A stretch of DNA of 49,971 nt, filler included, from Bipalium vagum (lineage: Eukaryota): assembly GCA_037834085.1 (NCBI GenBank). It is 3 parts of 3 records of this genome, joined end to end, with 100 filler letters (N's around TTAATTAATTAA, not from the genome) between each part and the next. Parts side by side here need not be neighbours in the genome. Positions count along the whole stretch, not along the records: positions 1 to 17,398 come from JBBMKC010067811.1; 2 more parts are not named here. One strand, written 5' to 3'. Shown here one piece after another: positions 72 through 10,506 of this stretch. The first letter of the stretch is position 1, and each line of letters starts with the position of its first letter. A program made the translations under genes and the position numbers. Below the pieces are notes generated by a model that was given only the letters and a program-made list of their open reading frames with translations, made no database searches and was not told the origin of the DNA.

Positions 72-1742
72 TAACTTGTCTTTAAGTTTTTTGGTTCTTT
101 TGACTAATGTAAAAAATAATTATTAGTTATTATCATATGGAACATAATAAAACCGGTAAATAAATAAATAATTTTTTTGAAATGAAGTATAAAAAATATG
201 AATTAACTTAAAAATCAATATTCCTGAATATAAATTACTTTCAAAATGACAATTTTGTTGTGTACTTTTGTTCTATTAAAGCATTATCAGTTTTTTATTA
301 ATATTTTTGCTTCATTTATTGAATGAATGAATAAAATCAAATCTAAAAATATTAAGGATTAATAACACTAAGAATAATTTGTTTAATTTTTTTGTTTTTT
401 AATGTAAAATAATTTTTACAGGAAATAACTTTTTATGTCATTTCCTTTCTTTTTTTATAAGACGAATGGGTCACGAGTTTTTTCAGGATTCTGTATCAAG
501 AAGTATATAAAATTGTCCAAAACTGCTACCTTAAATAAAGTTTATATTAAATGAAAATGGTTTTTTAATCACATTTGTCCAACGATTTTATGAGAGATTA
601 AAGTTTATGATACTTCATATGTCGGTTCGCAGGCCTTTACTTATTTCGGTCATTAGATTTTATTTTATGGTTTCGTTATAAAGTTTTATATGGTTTTTTT
701 TAACCAATTTCTACTTATTTTAACATTAAAAAGGTTTCGATACAAGGTTTGATAATATTAGATTTGCTTGTGATATTTGAAGTGAAATTTTGATAGTGTC
801 GATATTGTTAATTAAAATATTTTAAAATAAAATAAAATTGTTATAATAAAGTATGAAAAACTACGACCCAAAATCATTTTCGTCTATAATAACTTAATCG
901 GTTTAAAATGGCGTATTTTTCGAGGGATGAATTTTAAAAACGTTTTTTATAATATTAAATAAATGAAATAAGATAAATGAAAATGTTAAGTAAGTTATAA
1001 TTTGTTAAATATTCAATAAGTTTTTAAAAAATTATTATTGAAATTAAAACAAAGGAAAAGAAATACATTTTGATAAACAATTTAACCTTTAAAATTTAAA
1101 TTGTGATATGAATATGAACTGGCTTAGTATAAAAACAATATAGATTATGATATATAAAAACCATAACAAAAAACAAGTTGCCTATAAATCAAATCAGCTA
1201 ATTTATGGTTTTTGTCACATTTAGTAGGCTTTAATCATTAGTGGCACGATTTTATACTTTATTTTGGATTTTCTAGAAACTTAAAAGACTTTTAACGCCA
1301 GTCAAGGAAACAATTACCTATGAAGTGTGAATTCAAAATTTATTAGTTATTATATATTTATATTGATTTTGAAATTTTAAAAAATGGACACCCGTTATCA
1401 AGACAAAAATTCTGTTGCATTTTTTATTAAGAATATATTAGGTTATTCGGAAAATAATTAGTGTTTATACGAACGAAAATGAAAATAAAATAATATTAAT
1501 TTAAAGACATGATCTTATGATATCCTAATTCTCGTTGGACATCACTAAAGTGTTATCAATATCTTTTTGTAAACTTGGTTTTGGATAAGGATTTGGAATG
1601 GACCCATTATCTTACGGTTATAAGAAATGCTATTTTCCTTCACAGGTTTATATATGATTAAATTAGATTGATTAAACAAGACTCAATAATTCCGGTACAA
1701 TTCATTAAAATAATAAGTGGTTCGTTTTTATTGAAAATGAGT

Positions 1743-2720: not shown

Positions 2721-2947
2721 GACTTTTAATTCACAAAAACGTATTTATGACTTCTTTTGAATTTTTATATTTTGACATTTAAACTTATTAAATCTAAACT
2801 TTGAGCATGTCAAAAAAATTTTTCTTACCATTTTAAAAAATCTTTTCCTACCTCATTATTTTCTATTTTTCGTGTTTTAATTTATAATTAGTAAATATAT
2901 TTTTAACAAGATTTTTTGAAAATTACATTTAATTTGAAAAATATCAG

Positions 2948-3275
2948 GATGTCTCTGACAGATTTCATCAACAATTTCGATACTCTTGATATCTGCCATT
3001 TGCCAATTAATCTGAATGTCAAAGGAATTCAGATGAAAAACTTTTGGACTCTATTGTCTTTCCCTGGTGAGTGGAAAGTCGGTTTGAGCGCAGGAGGTCG
3101 TCCAAAATTGGTAAATTTCCATTTTATGAACCCACAATTTCTTTTGGATCTCAAAGATCCCACAGATAATTCTAATTGCTCATTGCTTATTGGTTTGCTT
3201 CAAGAAGATCCAAGAGGTGCTGAACCAAGTGTTGCTGGTCGCGGAAACCTAAGCATCGGATTTGTTATTTACCAG
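2948..3275 (+). CDS. Calpain internal exon (end of protease core and first half of domain III/C2-like); upstream exons lie outside the contig
   Basis: AG acceptor 2946-2947, phase-0 GT donor 3276. Translation (W)MSLTDFINNFDTLDICHL...GEWKVGLSAGG...NPQFLL...LLIGLLQ...IGFVIYQ matches calpain motifs. Confidence 0.93.
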
Positions 3276-5592
3276 GTAACTTATTTAAAATTACAGCTTC
3301 CCACATTTAATTTCTATCTTATATCAAGACTCAAAATTAAACTGATCAAAATATGTAAAATGCTGGTTTGGCTTTTTAAAAATTTTATTATTTATTTTCA
3401 CTATTTTGTTTTTACTATTTAAGTAATATACTGATTTTAAGGAGTCAATTTTTGATCTATAAATTCCAATTAAATCAAAAAATTTAAGGAATTAAAGAAT
3501 ATAAACTTTTGATTGACAATTTAGTTTTCTTTATTATCTTTTTTGGTGTTTCAGGAATAACATTGAATTTCTTATCTTTAATGTTAATATTGTGATCAAG
3601 AAACACCTCGTTTTTTATTTTCTTCCATTTTAATTGTTTAATCTTGAAGCCTGTGTCAAGGATTTATTTATTCAAAATCCCATCTAATCATTTTATATAA
3701 AATAAATTCTCTGGAATTTTTAATTTTCTATTTAAAATCAATATTATTAAATGTATATTAATAATATATAATTAATTGATTATTTTTATAAAATTATTGA
3801 AATTAGAATTTTTCAGTAAAGCTGATTTGACACTCTTTAATTAACTTAATTAATCAATCACTTTGTTAATATTATATATTTAAATTGATTTGAATTACTG
3901 AAAAAGGTAAATGACTTATTTAATATAATTTATTTTTTATATCTATTTATTATATATTTAATCTTTATTCTATTTCTTTTTATTTTTCATCAGCATTCTT
4001 AATGTATTGTTTACAGCTGATAGAATACATTCATGAATATTTTAAATAAATCAGTGCAAATACTTTTTTATTCTCAATTGAATAATTCTGTAAATATTTA
4101 AATAAGATAAATTCAGTGGAAAATTATTTAATTATATCAGAAAATTTTATCAATAATAAAATAATATAAAATAAATGAACTGAAACAATTTTTTATTTAA
4201 ATAAAAAAACAAAAGAATTCCTTTTTAATATATAACCATTTCAGTTTTTTAATAATCAGATATTAGATTTAAAAATCAAGTCTTAGATACCTTTAAAGGA
4301 ATCTTGAGGAATACTTTAATTTATATTTTCTCATTTATTCTATAGAAATAGAATTATTCTCATTCTCTTTAAATACTAAAATTTTAGATCTTCTCATTTT
4401 CTCATATAAGAATCGATTAAATAAGATCTCCGAGAAATGTATTCTAAAATATAAAATATGATTCTAAAACTTTAAACATTAATAACATGAAATACTTTTT
4501 CCGTATTATTAATTTTTCTAACATTTAATATGATTAATAAACATAAAATAATATTAATGATATAAAAAATAATAATAATAATAAACATTTACAAGCTTAT
4601 TTGTATTTTAAAATTTAATTTGAAAGAGTAAAATTGTTAATTATTTATTAACTAAAACAGTTTTAAATTTTCTAATTTATTATTATGCTCTATGAGATTT
4701 TTTTATGATTTTATTAATGAATTTTTAAGTATTTTTATGATTTAAAGTTTTTGTTAAATTTTAATTATTTATATCTCTTCTAATGCATTTTTTCATTCTG
4801 AAAAGTTTCTAACCATCTCTTGTTTTTTCAGGACTCTAAAGATTTATAATATTTTATGCTGCTTTCATCATAAATAGATCAATAAAAACTCTTTATCCTG
4901 AGAAATATTTTAAAGAAATTTTATGGAAATACTGTAAAGACCTGTGAGTATTACTTTAGTATATGGAATTCGAAAGAAAACTTAATTAAGGTTTACTTTT
5001 TATCTAAAGATATTTTCTTGTTCAAGAAAAATTCATTTGAACACAAAAGAAAAATAAATATAAAGCCAGATCTTTTCTGTGCTTTCATGTGTTTCCTTCC
5101 TGTTCTATTACTTATGTCTTGGCATTATAAATATCTATATAATTTATCAGTTTGAAAACTTTTATTATCGAAGTATCTTATATGATCAATAAATATTAAA
5201 ACTTCCTTTTTCTATTTTCATAAACTGACATATTAGTTAAATAAATGAAAAAATTAAATATAATCCTTAAAAACGCCTTTTTGATTGATTTGATCTATTA
5301 TTTATTAGATTCATTTTTCATAATTTTTATTCTCAATAATTAATTTTTATGTTTATTTAATAAATTTTAATCAACTTTTAATAATTAAAAAATATTTTTA
5401 TAATGTATTATTAATAGTAATATTTTTTTACCTCAAAATATTTTGGAGTTCCTAAAATTATGTTAAATATATATATATATAATATATAATGGTTTTTATT
5501 TTAACATGAAAAGTTTTAATAATTAATAAAAATAAGAATGGATTGAAGAAAGATTTTGTATTGTTAATATTCTTCAATTTCAATTACTATCA

Positions 5593-5684
5593 ATTTTCTT
5601 GATACATGTTTAAATGTAAATTGTCAAAAACATTGACTGATGAAGAACTGAAAAATAAAAGTTCGAAACATGTATCAAGAAAAT
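5593..5684 (+). ncRNA. Hammerhead ribozyme in calpain intron (probably Penelope-like pLTR derived)
   Basis: CTGATGA at 5637-5643, extra A, stem II GAACT/AGTTC, GAAA at 5665-5668, palindromic ACATGT and GTA site. Perfect 19-bp inverted repeat 5593-5611/5666-5684. Confidence 0.75.
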
Positions 5685-8038
5685 ATATATTTGAAAAATT
5701 TCTGTATTCATTTATTAAAAGGCGAACATTCGAAAAATAACTAGGATTGTGTTTTATATCTGATGTATATTATTTTACTGGTAAAATAACTGTCCAAAAA
5801 CAATTATTTGTTTATAAGTTCTTTTTTTTAATTTTTAAAAAATTTGCCTCTTTTAATAACTTTGATTCATTAATTAAATTTATAGATTTAAAAAATTCTA
5901 GTTCTATTAGAATTAATTTCCAGAAAACAATTTTTATATTTGACTGGTTTTTTAGTATTTTTAAAAATCAAAAATATATAATTAATGAACTGGTTTCAAA
6001 ATCTTATTTATAATTTTAAATTAATTTTAGAAATGGAAAGTTTTTATTCTGATAAAATCTTTTGTACGAAAAAATGCGTTTTTCAAAATATATTACTGTT
6101 TTATATTTTTGAAAAATTTAAATAATAATTTTAATTCATTATTTAGTTTTTTTTTAATGTAGATTTCTATTTTATCTTATATAATTATATTTTATTTAGT
6201 TAGTTGTTATTTATTATTGAAATCCAATTTAATTCTGTTATTCCTTTAAAGTAACATCAATCAGAAGAAAAAAACCATAACTAATTGATATCATTTTCTA
6301 ATATATAGTTTTCATAAATAAATAAAATGCCACCAGTATTTTTTCTTCTTTCTGGGTTTTAATGGCACAAGATAACTTAATAAATAAAAACTGTTGCTAA
6401 ATTATGGAAATTTTCTTCAAAAATCGATAAAGAAAGTATGATTTATTAATACATGAAAATAAAAATGTTATTAGGTAATAATTTTTCATACATTCTATAC
6501 ATTGTATAAGACATATCAATATGAACGGATTTAGAGAATTATTACATATATCAAGTTGCTAAATGTAATTAAAGGAATTTTATCAAATTCCGTTGAGACT
6601 AGAGAAAGATAGAATACAAATATGAAATTAATCAATGAAGAAAAGCTTGGGAATAATTTCTGTGCAAAACATTGGATCTCGCATTAGATATTACTAAGAA
6701 AATCAAATATCTATTAATTATTTTCTGATATAGCTGAGACATCAGTGTTTTTTTATTCATTAATATATATACTTAAAATAATAAATATATATAAACTAAA
6801 CGTTACACGGGCAAATTTGACAATAAGTAGATATTAATGCATTTTTAAATGATTAGCTTAATAACTTCTAAGGTGATATAAATAATTCTCAATAATTTCA
6901 TTTAAAAATAAGACGATTTCCCTTAAACAAATAAGTAATTAAAGAAAATATAGATATCCTTTTTGTTTTTCTTTTACAACTAGTAAATTTTGTTCCAATA
7001 CGTTCTCTGATTTATTCAAAACTATGTTAACAGATTCCTGTGAACCTTTAACCGTGAAACCTGTTTAAAACTTTACTCGTAAAATAGTGAGTTAAGTTAC
7101 CCTTCCCTGTAAATCATTTGATTATGCACATTCAGTTAATCTCAGCTTCTTTTCTGCGATTTAGGTACTAGATATTTGAGATTATTGAGATATTTAGAGA
7201 TTCAGCTTCTTTTACATTTGTGGTAATGTTTTTAACTTGAATATGCGTCCTTCCATTCATCGAGTAACGTATATATTGATTATTTCTTATAGCTTGAACT
7301 AAAATTTATCTCTATTGCTGATAATTTATTAATTTTTCTCAAATATTTTCAACATTTTTCATTGTTCTTTATCCATAGACAGAAAATAGGTCTGTTAAAA
7401 ATTTAAAATTACAGGAATATTGATACTTCCTCAATTTATTCCTTTTAATTATCATTTCTACAATTCAAAATATTATTGTCAGCATAAAAATCGTGAATTG
7501 AAGTAAATGGCACTAGAGCGCAGCATTCAGCATTTTAAAAATTCTATTTTCACACCATTCGAAAGGTTTTGAGTCAAAACTTGTTACAAGGCTTTTTTCC
7601 AGATTTTGCTTATTTTGAAACATTATTTTTCAATTTTTTTGAATGTTATACTTAAATAATAATTAAAGGAATTTATGAAAACTTTATTTTATTATTTTAT
7701 AATATAATGTGGGTCAATTATGATACTATACAAATACTATATAAATACTTTATTATTTCGAATAAAATAATTATATTTATTATCAGTTTATGTGAGAAAA
7801 ATAGAAATCTCTTTATTGATTCTTAATATTTCCTAGATTCCGATTAAAAAAATAAAAATATTACACTCGGGATATTCTGTGTGTCACTTATATTGATCTA
7901 AAACGCAAGTGTTTTGACTTCATATGGTATGTTCGTAACCATTTAAAATAAATTTTAAAATTAGTAGGTTTTGATATATCTCAGTCATTTAATTGTGTAA
8001 GCGAAACTTTAAGCTACAATTGGTTCTTGTTGTTTCAG

Positions 8039-8738
8039 TTAAAATCAAAGGATATCCAAATTCCTTTGAGACGTGAATTTTTCACAACAAATACATTCGT
8101 TGCAAGCGTAGACTCTTTCATCAACTCTAGAGAGGTTGTCAAGCGCTTTCAGTTGCCTGTTGGAACGTATTTAGTGGTCCCGTGTACTTACGATTCCAAC
8201 CAAGAAGGTCGATTTCTGTTGAGAATTTTCATAGAGTCTGTGAGTAATGGAGTTTTCTCTACCGATAATATTCCAATGACCAGTCAGTCCGAAATAAAAA
8301 TCGAACCTCAAAAGGAAATTATTGTTCGTCAAATGTTTTATCGAGAATCAAATGTCGAAATGGCGCTCACATCTTTCCAGTTTCAACGACTGATAAATTG
8401 GTTTTTAAAAGATTCCGGTTTTAAATATGAATTGAACATTGAGGCCTGTAAAGCAATTGTGGTTCTATTCGATCAATCAATTGGCAAAATAGAACCAACT
8501 TTTAAATTTATAGAAGCACATTTCATCCCAATGTGGACTTGGCTTTTGCGTTGTCTGAAGCAAATACAATCGGCTGATTTAATCGGACCTGTTGCTCTTC
8601 AAAAATCTATGGAAAATCTTCAATTATCAGTCAGCAATCAAACTATACAGAACTTGATTCATAGATTCGCAAATGAATCTGGCTCCATTTCTGTTTCTGG
8701 ATTCATTACCATAGTGGCCATTATTTCGAAAACAAACG
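8039..8738 (+). CDS. Calpain exon (rest of domain III plus degenerate penta-EF-hand domain)
   Basis: TTTCAG acceptor ending 8038 is in phase with the previous exon. SFINSREVVKRFQLPVGTYLVVPCTYDSNQEGRFLLRIF is canonical domain III. GTAAT donor at 8739. Confidence 0.92.
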
Positions 8739-8798
8739 GTAATAATTATAATTATTACGTAAATATGTTGACATTTTCTTTTAACAAATTATATTCAG

Positions 8799-8821
8799 GA
8801 TCGATCATGATGCACAATATT
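8799..8821 (+). CDS. Putative 23-nt calpain micro-exon ((G)SIMMHNI)
   Basis: 60-bp GT..AG intron 8739-8798, then a possible GTTTAT donor at 8822 that puts the 14438 exon in phase. Inferred from phase only. Confidence 0.4.
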
Positions 8822-9394
8822 GTTTATTTATTTTATTATGTTAATTATTATTATATTATTATTATTATTATTAAAACAAGTAGTATAAGTAAATATTCTT
8901 TTAAAATTCATTTTTAATATAATATGTTTTGCGCTAAAATTATCCCTCTCTTAGAAAAATGATTTAAAAACAATAATATTGAAATTTACAATTCCTATTA
9001 AGTTAACCTTGTTAAGAGCAATCACACAGATGTCAACAAAACATTTATTGATAAAATTTCCATCAGTAGTTGTAACCCCTTATAACAGCAACAGTTTTTA
9101 AAAATTCAGGTAAAGCGAAGTTTTACCGGGTAATTTTACTATAATATTATCATTATTAATGTTTTTTTTATTTTCATTATATAATGAATAAATTTTTATC
9201 ATTAATATTAATATATTATTTTATTTATTTCATATATTTTCGATGTTATTGCATCATTATTTTTGAAGAAAAATAATATATTATTATTTTATAAAATGTA
9301 TTTATTAAGTTTATACATTGAAAGTGAGCCTTTTTCTACATTTTTTATTTAATAAGTAATATAAATATTAAATAAACATAAAACGAAAAAAATA

Positions 9395-10506
9395 GTTTAT
9401 TCAAAATATTCCATCGTTAATAATAACTTTCTTTCATTTTTCAGGATTGGAAGCGCTTCTGCAAAAGTGCCATCGATCGAAACAGATGTTAGTCAGAAGG
9501 GGCGTAGTCTGTTGAATGGGTAGCATTGGTAGCACTTCCCATTGAAGCAACTCTAATATTTTCTGGACTCGTTTGTTGGCGTGTGGCTGGGCGTTGTCAT
9601 GCAGCAAAATTAGTTTATGCTGCCTTTTCTCATATTCTGGTTTTTTTTGCAAAAAGACTTATAAATTATTTATTTATTAACCGTTTTACATTACTTTTGC
9701 AACTCATGATGGATCACACCTTTTTAGTTCCACCAGATGCTTAGGAGAGCCTTTTCCCATGGATGTTTCTCTGGGGTATTGCTTTGGAAGGCTGTCCGGG
9801 ATCGCAAATTGGTTTTCTGCGTTTAGGATTTTTGAAAGAAATCCACTTTTCGTCGACCATAATAATTCGGTGCAAAAAATTTTTCTTTTTTGTCGAGCAA
9901 CCAAAATTTCAAACTTAACTTTACATCTTTCCATGCCTATCACATTTACCTCGAGTGGTACCCATCTTCCTACATTGTATACCTTTCCCGTGGCTTTTAG
10001 ACGTCGGCTTATTGAAGATTGAGAAACATTTAATGATTTAGCGAGATCAGTTTGAGTTTGGCACCGATTTTCAACCATCAATGCTTCTAGGTCTTGACCT
10101 CCAAATGCTTTCTTTTATTCTGGGCGCTCTTTATAATCCACCATAAATTTGCCCTTTCGGAAACCTACAAACCATCTTTTGTAAGCGGCTTTTGATAGAG
10201 CGATGTCTCCTTAAGCCGCCACAAGGATTCTGTGAGTTTCTGCTGCAGATTCTTTAATACCAAAATGAAATAAAATCTCTTTGTGCAAATGTTGCTTATT
10301 TGGTATTACCGTCATTGGTAAACCGTCATCTAAAAAGGATAAAATAAGATATATACTTAAGGAAATCAGATATCAGAATATTTTTTACAGATTATTTTTG
10401 ATAAATTCGGAAAAAATATATATTCAAATAGTTTATTATCTTTATAGTTTATTTTCTTTATTACAATTATTTAAAAAGGGTTCAATTTCAATGCATATAC
10501 CTAATA
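9395..10506 (-). mobile_element. Decayed mariner, Mos1/mauritiana-like
   Basis: Minus strand MTVIPNKQHLHKEILFHF..KESAAETHRIL, GRWVPLEV (WVPHEL), LLHDNAQPH. TIR-like TATTAGGTATATGCATTGAAATTG at the right end. Several frameshifts and stops. Confidence 0.92.

Follow-up and report, generated by a model that had tools for sequence, protein, structure and literature searches.

The window analysed here is the whole stretch of DNA under study, 49,971 nucleotides (filler included) from the assembly GCA_037834085.1 of Bipalium vagum. It contains two exon segments of a calpain gene, both on the + strand. The upstream segment (3065-3285, ORF 2916-3422) matches the first half of domain III (PF01067, E 5.4e-12, residues 50-123) and the downstream segment (8033-8230, ORF 8027-8917) matches the second half (PF01067, E 1.9e-17, residues 3-68); these coordinates are the limits of the Pfam matches, from which the splice sites may differ. 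A hammerhead motif lies between the two segments. Since both Calpain_III halves are on the + strand and flank the motif, the latter is intronic and on the sense strand of the calpain gene, which agrees with the original prediction made from the sequence of this locus. Further downstream, beyond the second calpain exon, two ORFs on the - strand (9434-10081) resemble remnants of mariner/Tc1-type transposases. The first corresponds to the N-terminal helix-turn-helix part, with weak Pfam HTH matches. The second, for which Pfam gave no match at E<=0.01, is presumably a C-terminal piece with an HDNA.PH-type motif.

The direct reading of the sequence reveals that all the parts of a minimal type I hammerhead are present on the + strand between 5633 and 5678. 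The 5' strand of helix I (UUGA, 5633-5636, positions 2.4-2.1) pairs with the 3' strand UCAA (5675-5678, positions 1.1-1.4). It is followed by the catalytic box CUGAUGA (C3 to A9, 5637-5643), in which only the position N7 varies across families, and by an extra unpaired A (5644) located between A9 and G10.1. Helix II is a hairpin of 5 bp (GAACU/AGUUC, 5645-5664, with the arms 5645-5649 and 5660-5664 and a loop of 10 nt). Its closing pair G10.1-C11.1 corresponds to G5645-C5664 and is G-C in 10 of the 10 aligned sequences. The second catalytic box, GAAA (G12 to A15.1, 5665-5668), is invariant in the alignment A1 and overlaps the palindrome ACAUGU (15.1-16.1, 5668-5673). This palindrome has no loop, and helix III therefore needs a second copy of the motif. 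According to the hammerhead numbering, the predicted type I cleavage site is placed after A17 (A5674, the last residue of the triplet GUA), at 5674/5675.

We have used a descriptor of the minimal hammerhead in which CUGANGA, with up to one extra nucleotide, leads into helix II (4 bp or more, with a closing G-C pair), followed by GAAA, a palindrome of 2-6 nt and UH, and in which helix I must also have 4 bp or more. The window contains one match to it (5637), and 1500 windows simulated from it with a first-order Markov model contain none; the elements of the motif occupy the positions on the + strand that had been assigned to them beforehand. The hammerhead models of Rfam, which had been proposed as a check of the motif, did not recognize it: neither Hammerhead_1 (RF00163, gathering score of 34 bits) nor Hammerhead_3 (RF00008) gave a match at the gathering score, or even at E<=10 on 5500-5800 (301 nt). 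We explain this result by three features of the motif: A9 is followed by an additional nucleotide, loop 3 is missing, and helix I is AU-rich and has 4 bp. It was not counted against the motif because the published minimal hammerheads have also been found only with relaxed descriptors; the membership therefore rests on the descriptor and the literature, in place of a curated model. The exact motif strings retrieved only unrelated primers from the literature.

The repeat carrying the motif and its genomic family

The region 5560-5720 was used as query against the assembly of the same genome (440 Mb, 272,664 contigs). This search has recovered 836 first-look candidates, of which at least 40 display 90-100% identity. 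All of the forty copies scored cover only the positions 50/53 to 161 of the query, that is, the window from 5609/5612 on. From the BLAST comparison with fetched loci, the window is 89-95% identical to 29 other loci across 5612-5740/5743, and the alignment of the flanks reveals that the other copies run on upstream into a common element sequence which is missing from the window copy. Judging from these alignments, the segment from 5612 to ~5742 (+ strand, ~130 nt) is a 5'-truncated copy of a high-copy Penelope-like element (PLE), of which it represents the 3' untranslated/pLTR region. The point of 5' truncation varies among the copies.

The abundance of the family was estimated in several ways. 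At least 150 matches to a covariance model were obtained genome-wide at 69 bits or more; this search recovered the main family only and no diverged relatives. The string composed of the core, helix II and GAAACAUGU is present in 202 exact copies in the assembly, against 0 for the reversed control. Word depth, summed over the contigs of the sole public run (whose kind is unrecorded), is ~16 in the unique flanks and from ~5,800 to ~86,000 in the repeat (5562-5709, with the peak at 5636-5709). It is therefore probable that the copy number of the 3' region of the element far exceeds what this fragmented assembly shows.

The assignment to the PLEs comes from the longer copies. These share more than 1.5 kb of upstream sequence encoding fragments with reverse-transcriptase motifs; the reverse-transcriptase piece has 711 candidates in the genome, most of them containing stops. 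In the longer copies, a match to RVT_1 (E 1.3e-11, 45.1 bits for a cut-off of 29.6) is followed downstream, on the same strand, by a GIY-YIG match (E 3.4e-4) whose score of 21.3 bits is 1.3 under the Pfam cut-off of 22.6 bits; the motif YIG..R..EH is visible in this region despite the score. The neighbours of the reverse transcriptase in the Atlas are animal (invertebrate) RVT_1/HTH_animal clusters. The hammerhead motif is located ~200 nt past the stop of the endonuclease ORF and ~95 nt ahead of the common 3' end, and the family sequence that precedes it starts ~130 nt past this stop; the position of the motif within the PLE was thus defined on the 3' region of the longer copies. It is because these copies carry a reverse transcriptase and then a GIY-YIG domain upstream of the ribozyme that we identify the repeat as a PLE, and the two neighbouring ORFs are those that had been expected if the motif belonged to such an element.

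Features reported for the PLEs include 5' truncation, an optional tail of 30-40 bp and tandem or inverted copies (PMC8557442). In this genome, a block of ~29 nt (TTTATATTGTTCACAAGATTAAGATTAA) occurs after the common 3' end in L002, L006, L007, L011, L023 and other loci and is absent from some copies (L010, L008 and L005); it resembles the optional tail. L010 is bordered on each side by a duplicate of ~13 nt of flank (TTATAGTTACCA). In the window copy, the tail is absent and a target-site duplication could not be recognised. One locus (L098) contains two 3' regions of the element head to head, at 414-515 (- strand) and 1148-1354 (+ strand), ~630 nt apart. Inverted arrangements of this type have been reported for PLE insertions (PMC8557442), and dual minimal hammerheads on opposite strands have been reported in such an arrangement.

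Sister families and conservation of the hammerhead

Sister PLE families, with a reverse transcriptase 60-65% identical, retain the minimal hammerhead motif. The extra nucleotide after A9 is U instead of A (seen in two sister families), and the loops of helix II are shorter or different. In helix I, a sister family has AUGA/UCAU for UUGA/UCAA, which is a compensatory change, and in helix II GAUCU/AGAUC is found in a sister family for GAACU/AGUUC, where the third pair A-U is replaced by U-A. The pattern of the U variant has 240 exact matches genome-wide against 0 in the control. Motifs of the sister families were located on the - strand in L069:1462-1521, L070:1402-1461 and L033:4036-4095. Among 20 loci picked by diverged reverse-transcriptase matches, two contain a hammerhead; the others are cut by contig ends or decayed.

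An alignment of 10 sequences was used to measure the conservation of the helices. The covariation score is 0.099, whereas shuffles give 0.023, and 7 of 500 shuffles reach it. Double changes are observed at two pairs, one in helix I and one in helix II, and 91% of the paired cells can pair, against 28-55% for slid partners. As only two pairs contribute, and the three or four families compared are related and belong to a single genome, the covariation gives modest but consistent backing to the predicted hammerhead helices.

Other hammerheads exist in the genome. Canonical type I loci are found on very short contigs (L034:371-415, - strand; L035:269-313, + strand; L036-L040), and have a GUCC/GGAC helix II, a helix I of 6 bp and a palindromic helix III, for instance AUCAUGAU or ACUGCAGU. 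Two of them are recognized by Rfam Hammerhead_1 with 39 and 35 bits, over the cut-off of 34 bits. These loci may be other PLE families or retrozyme-like tandem repeats. Moreover, in the string matched at G000:C242608:204-260 (- strand), the end of a hammerhead (GAAACAUGUUUCAU) can be read and, ~30 nt further on and in the same orientation, the beginning of a second one (UUGACUGAAGA), which may be a close tandem of hammerhead motifs.

The minimal hammerheads of the PLEs have been described by Cervera and de la Pena (2014, PMC4209133). They have an unpaired nucleotide between A9 and G10.1, a G10.1-C11.1 pair and a palindromic 15.2-16.2 without real helix III, and are sited in the flanking repeats of PLEs, mostly as dispersed single motifs in truncated elements. 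No in vitro self-cleavage was detectable for single motifs and that of dimers was low (PMC4209133). A PLE hammerhead has been reported as protein-assisted (PMC11167929); in a lizard PLE, the hammerhead depended on the protein of the element, and insertion in vitro did not require the hammerhead. The window motif has all four of the hallmarks listed in PMC4209133 in addition to those of the descriptor. The cofold of two copies contains an intermolecular palindrome helix, with -18.2 kcal/mol versus 2 x -6.9 (-13.8) kcal/mol for the monomers.

The first of the two folds of the original prediction was a minimal type I hammerhead of the PLE kind. The truncated PLE context and the four hallmarks speak for it: because the architecture is that of the published minimal hammerheads and the sister families keep the motif with compensatory changes, the sequence data support this fold as a predicted minimal type I hammerhead of the known PLE kind, outside RF00163. 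A chance match in AT-rich DNA would be in keeping with the short, AU-rich helices and with the blindness of the Rfam models. The probability of such a coincidence is nevertheless negligible, given that the descriptor had no match in the 1500 simulated windows, that the motif is found in hundreds of copies at a fixed position of the PLE with no match for the reversed patterns, that the sister families contain compensatory changes and that four independent hallmarks agree with the published minimal hammerhead. The comparison within the family can be said to have effectively refuted it already. This finding adds one more family, specific to this genome, to the minimal hammerheads that are already well described in PLEs, and its importance lies mainly in annotation: several hundred hammerhead motifs of this genome, contained in the 130-nt repeat and in the sister families, escape the Rfam models owing to the additional nucleotide that follows A9 and to the lack of loop 3.

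The inverted left arm and the predicted folds

A left arm, identified with an inverted-repeat finder (5588-5611, + strand), is a locus-specific inverted copy of 5666-5689 (24 nt at 92%). Within it, 5593-5611 is the perfect reverse complement of 5666-5684 over 19 nt, exactly as had been described from the sequence, and a gapped alignment stretches the inverted repeat to about 5578/5697. The original prediction proposed to look for this arm in other genomic copies. The arm is missing from every other copy in the alignment of the flanks and is present in one of the 50 distinct copies examined, that of the window. A relaxed pattern (arm, 10-40 nt, core) has recovered four places in the whole assembly, and the arrangement itself exists only in the window. 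The original prediction also considered an inverted duplication as typical of PLE insertion. Inverted 5'-truncated pieces adjoining PLE insertions are indeed documented (Craig et al. 2021, PMC8557442). The arm itself is foreign to the element family. Another weak inverted match, to the region of the element upstream of the hammerhead, was observed at 5379-5429 (76-82% over 50-67 nt). This AT-rich, low-complexity sequence does not have the order that a contiguous inverted copy would require, and was rejected as a piece of the element, the match being probably due to chance.

The reality of the arm depends on the junction 5611/5612. An artefact of short-read assembly, the real locus being simply a truncated PLE copy, would agree with the difficulties that tandem and inverted PLE structures cause in short-read assemblies (PMC8557442) and with the fragmentation of this genome into 272,664 contigs; the contigs of the public run break inside the repeat and none of those listed crosses 5611/5612. 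Such an artefact appears very improbable, as unique sequence, collinear with the calpain gene, borders the locus to the left and to the right, and as no long word at the junction is shared with the element in one orientation or the other. The common sequence is limited to TTT, and a mis-join of the assembly graph is therefore not expected at this place.

The minimum free energy (MFE) structure of 5585-5692 has -29.5 kcal/mol (z-score -7.3), and none of 200 shuffles folds as well. In this structure the arm forms a 19-bp stem and the core is paired. The stem covers A14 and A13 of the second catalytic box, with pair probabilities of 0.96 for U5610-A5667 and 0.86 for U5611-A5666. C3 is paired with G5623 (probability of 0.95) in a hairpin specific to the window (GUCAA-AAACA-UUGAC, 5623-5637, where 5623-5627 pair with 5633-5637); the residue 5623 is A in the other aligned copies, and the G creates this 5-bp hairpin and strengthens the pairing of C3. 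The 3' strand of helix I (5675-5678) is buried in the stem with 5599-5602. Since this strand and the cleavage site are both inside the stem, the type I fold (-4.3 kcal/mol) is excluded at this locus according to the model, its helix I having a pair probability of 0.0. No second copy of the motif was found within the window.

The second fold of the original prediction was a type III hammerhead in which the arm supplies a helix III of 17 bp in cis, which would make the ribozyme self-sufficient and able to cut the calpain intron after U5610. As a drawing, this fold is formally correct. The triplet GUU is present at 5608-5610, helix I (5611-5617/5630-5636) has 6 of 7 pairs, and G16.2-C15.2, U16.1-A15.1, U at position H17 and helix II can all be drawn. 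An extra A after A9 is, moreover, reportedly tolerated in a viroid hammerhead. Cleavage of a single minimal hammerhead provided with an artificial helix III in imitation of the dimer has been obtained, mostly at non-physiological Mg2+ (PMC4209133). The folding does not uphold a monomer-active type III ribozyme, nor do Rfam and the distribution of the arm. The active-like type III fold, at -22.3 to -24.6 kcal/mol, is 5-7 kcal/mol above the MFE, and the states where the core is free represent ~4e-4 of the ensemble, A13, A14 and C3 being paired as indicated above. The only mismatch of helix I, A5612/G5635, corresponds to the positions 1.2/2.2, adjacent to the bond to be cut. Among the cleavage triplets that hammerheads allow, GUU is the weakest. 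Furthermore, it arises here by symmetry, because the reverse complement of GAAA and the palindrome always gives the palindrome followed by UUUC, and its presence is no evidence of design. Hammerhead_3 has no match at E<=10, and the arrangement is unique among the 50 copies and assembly-wide, so that nothing points to a selection for the type III fold. Cleavage as type III is, on these models, very unlikely.

If it took place, the locus would be a natural switch from type I to type III topology through an accident of retrotransposition (the inverted 24-nt piece at the junction), and it would illustrate how new topologies of ribozymes arise within host genes when transposons are rearranged; the computations speak against such an event. 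The original prediction had mentioned the opposite outcome, where the two additional U-A pairs invade the GAAA core. With their probabilities of 0.96 and 0.86 these pairs fit the predicted structure better than an activation does, and the silencing of the ribozyme core by the arm is the better-supported outcome of the modelling. The type III arrangement is thus most likely, as modelled, a by-product of the insertion at this locus, which would inactivate the motif instead of activating it. In any case, the locus is a natural construct for an existing question, namely whether minimal hammerheads cleave when a stable helix III is provided.

The hairpin, with its perfect 19-bp stem and its loop of 54 nt, could also act as such: the intron RNA would be diced into small RNAs directed against the PLE family. 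The high stability of the fold relative to the shuffles goes in this direction, as does the fact that one of the arms belongs to the element and recurs in hundreds of copies. A stem of 19 bp is nonetheless short for a source of siRNA from long hairpins, a structured loop of 54 nt is atypical among animal miRNA precursors, and the hairpin concerns a single locus without evidence of conservation. A weak match to a miRNA-precursor model (15 bits, E 2.1) reflects the hairpin shape only. We give very little credit to this explanation.

Proposed origin of the locus and comparison with known systems

From these data, a history of the locus can be proposed. A PLE would have been inserted in sense orientation into the calpain intron with a 5' truncation that left its last ~130 nt (5612 to ~5742), a 3' part in which every copy of the family appears to carry the minimal type I hammerhead motif. 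During the life cycle of the element, as the literature suggests, two motifs on a tandem or read-through transcript would pair through the palindrome to give a double hammerhead, which would cut the precursor RNA, possibly with the help of the element protein. The locus of the window would have retained one motif only, and the inverted 24-nt piece of the element would have been added at the truncation junction. This arm may have arisen if the reverse transcriptase, at the point of truncation, switched templates to the nascent cDNA, or may be the remnant of a head-to-head inverted insertion, which is common for PLEs (PMC8557442). Its perfect pairing with the right half of the ribozyme would bury the cleavage site, the 3' strand of helix I, A13 and A14 in the 19-bp stem, and the locus is therefore most likely a silent relic. 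The energies on which this is based concern secondary structure, tertiary contacts, co-transcriptional folding and proteins being outside the model, and 'silent' is therefore to be read as a prediction. As a whole, we consider it highly probable that the locus is a truncated PLE copy with a minimal hammerhead motif, locked by its arm into a catalytically silent hairpin relic in the intron.

Concerning the known systems, the canonical metazoan hammerheads of the Hammerhead_1 type (RF00163; Schistosoma Sm-alpha, newt satellite 2) share with the window motif the core and the logic of dimers formed by a palindromic helix III. Contrary to them, the window motif has an extra nucleotide after A9, a helix I of 4 bp and no loop 3. 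The type III hammerheads of viroids, satellites and plant retrozymes (RF00008) have an open helix III and closed helices I and II, as in the second fold. This fold differs from them by a helix III that invades the core, by the mismatch 1.2/2.2 in helix I, by the lack of conservation and by a cleavage-site strand that is an accidental inverted copy. The intronic hammerheads of protein-coding genes are located, like the window motif, on the sense strand within an intron. They are monomer-competent, with a stable helix III, and conserved at orthologous sites of different species, whereas the window motif belongs to a recent transposon copy without sign of conservation.

In the PLE insertions described by Craig et al. 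(2021, PMC8557442), as in the window, an inverted element sequence abuts head to head the 5' end of a truncated copy. The difference is that the inverted piece of the window is only 24-34 nt long and comes from an internal segment (5666 to ~5697), not from the 3' end of the element; it therefore overlaps the direct copy and makes a hairpin instead of flanking repeats.

The closest system is represented by the minimal hammerheads of the PLEs (PMC4209133). The window motif differs from them in its helix II of 5 bp with an A-rich loop of 10 nt (7-8 bp in the minimal hammerheads of Schistosoma), in the homogeneity of its family (~90-95% identity, whereas the minimal hammerheads of most genomes are highly variable) and in the inverted arm, found only in the window copy. 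It shares with them the type I topology, the boxes CUGANGA and GAAA, the unpaired nucleotide between 9 and 10.1, the G10.1-C11.1 pair, the short helix I of 4 bp and the palindromic 15.2-16.2 without loop 3. The location in the flanking or 3' region of PLEs is also common to both, together with the organization in large consensus families within one genome, mostly as dispersed single motifs.
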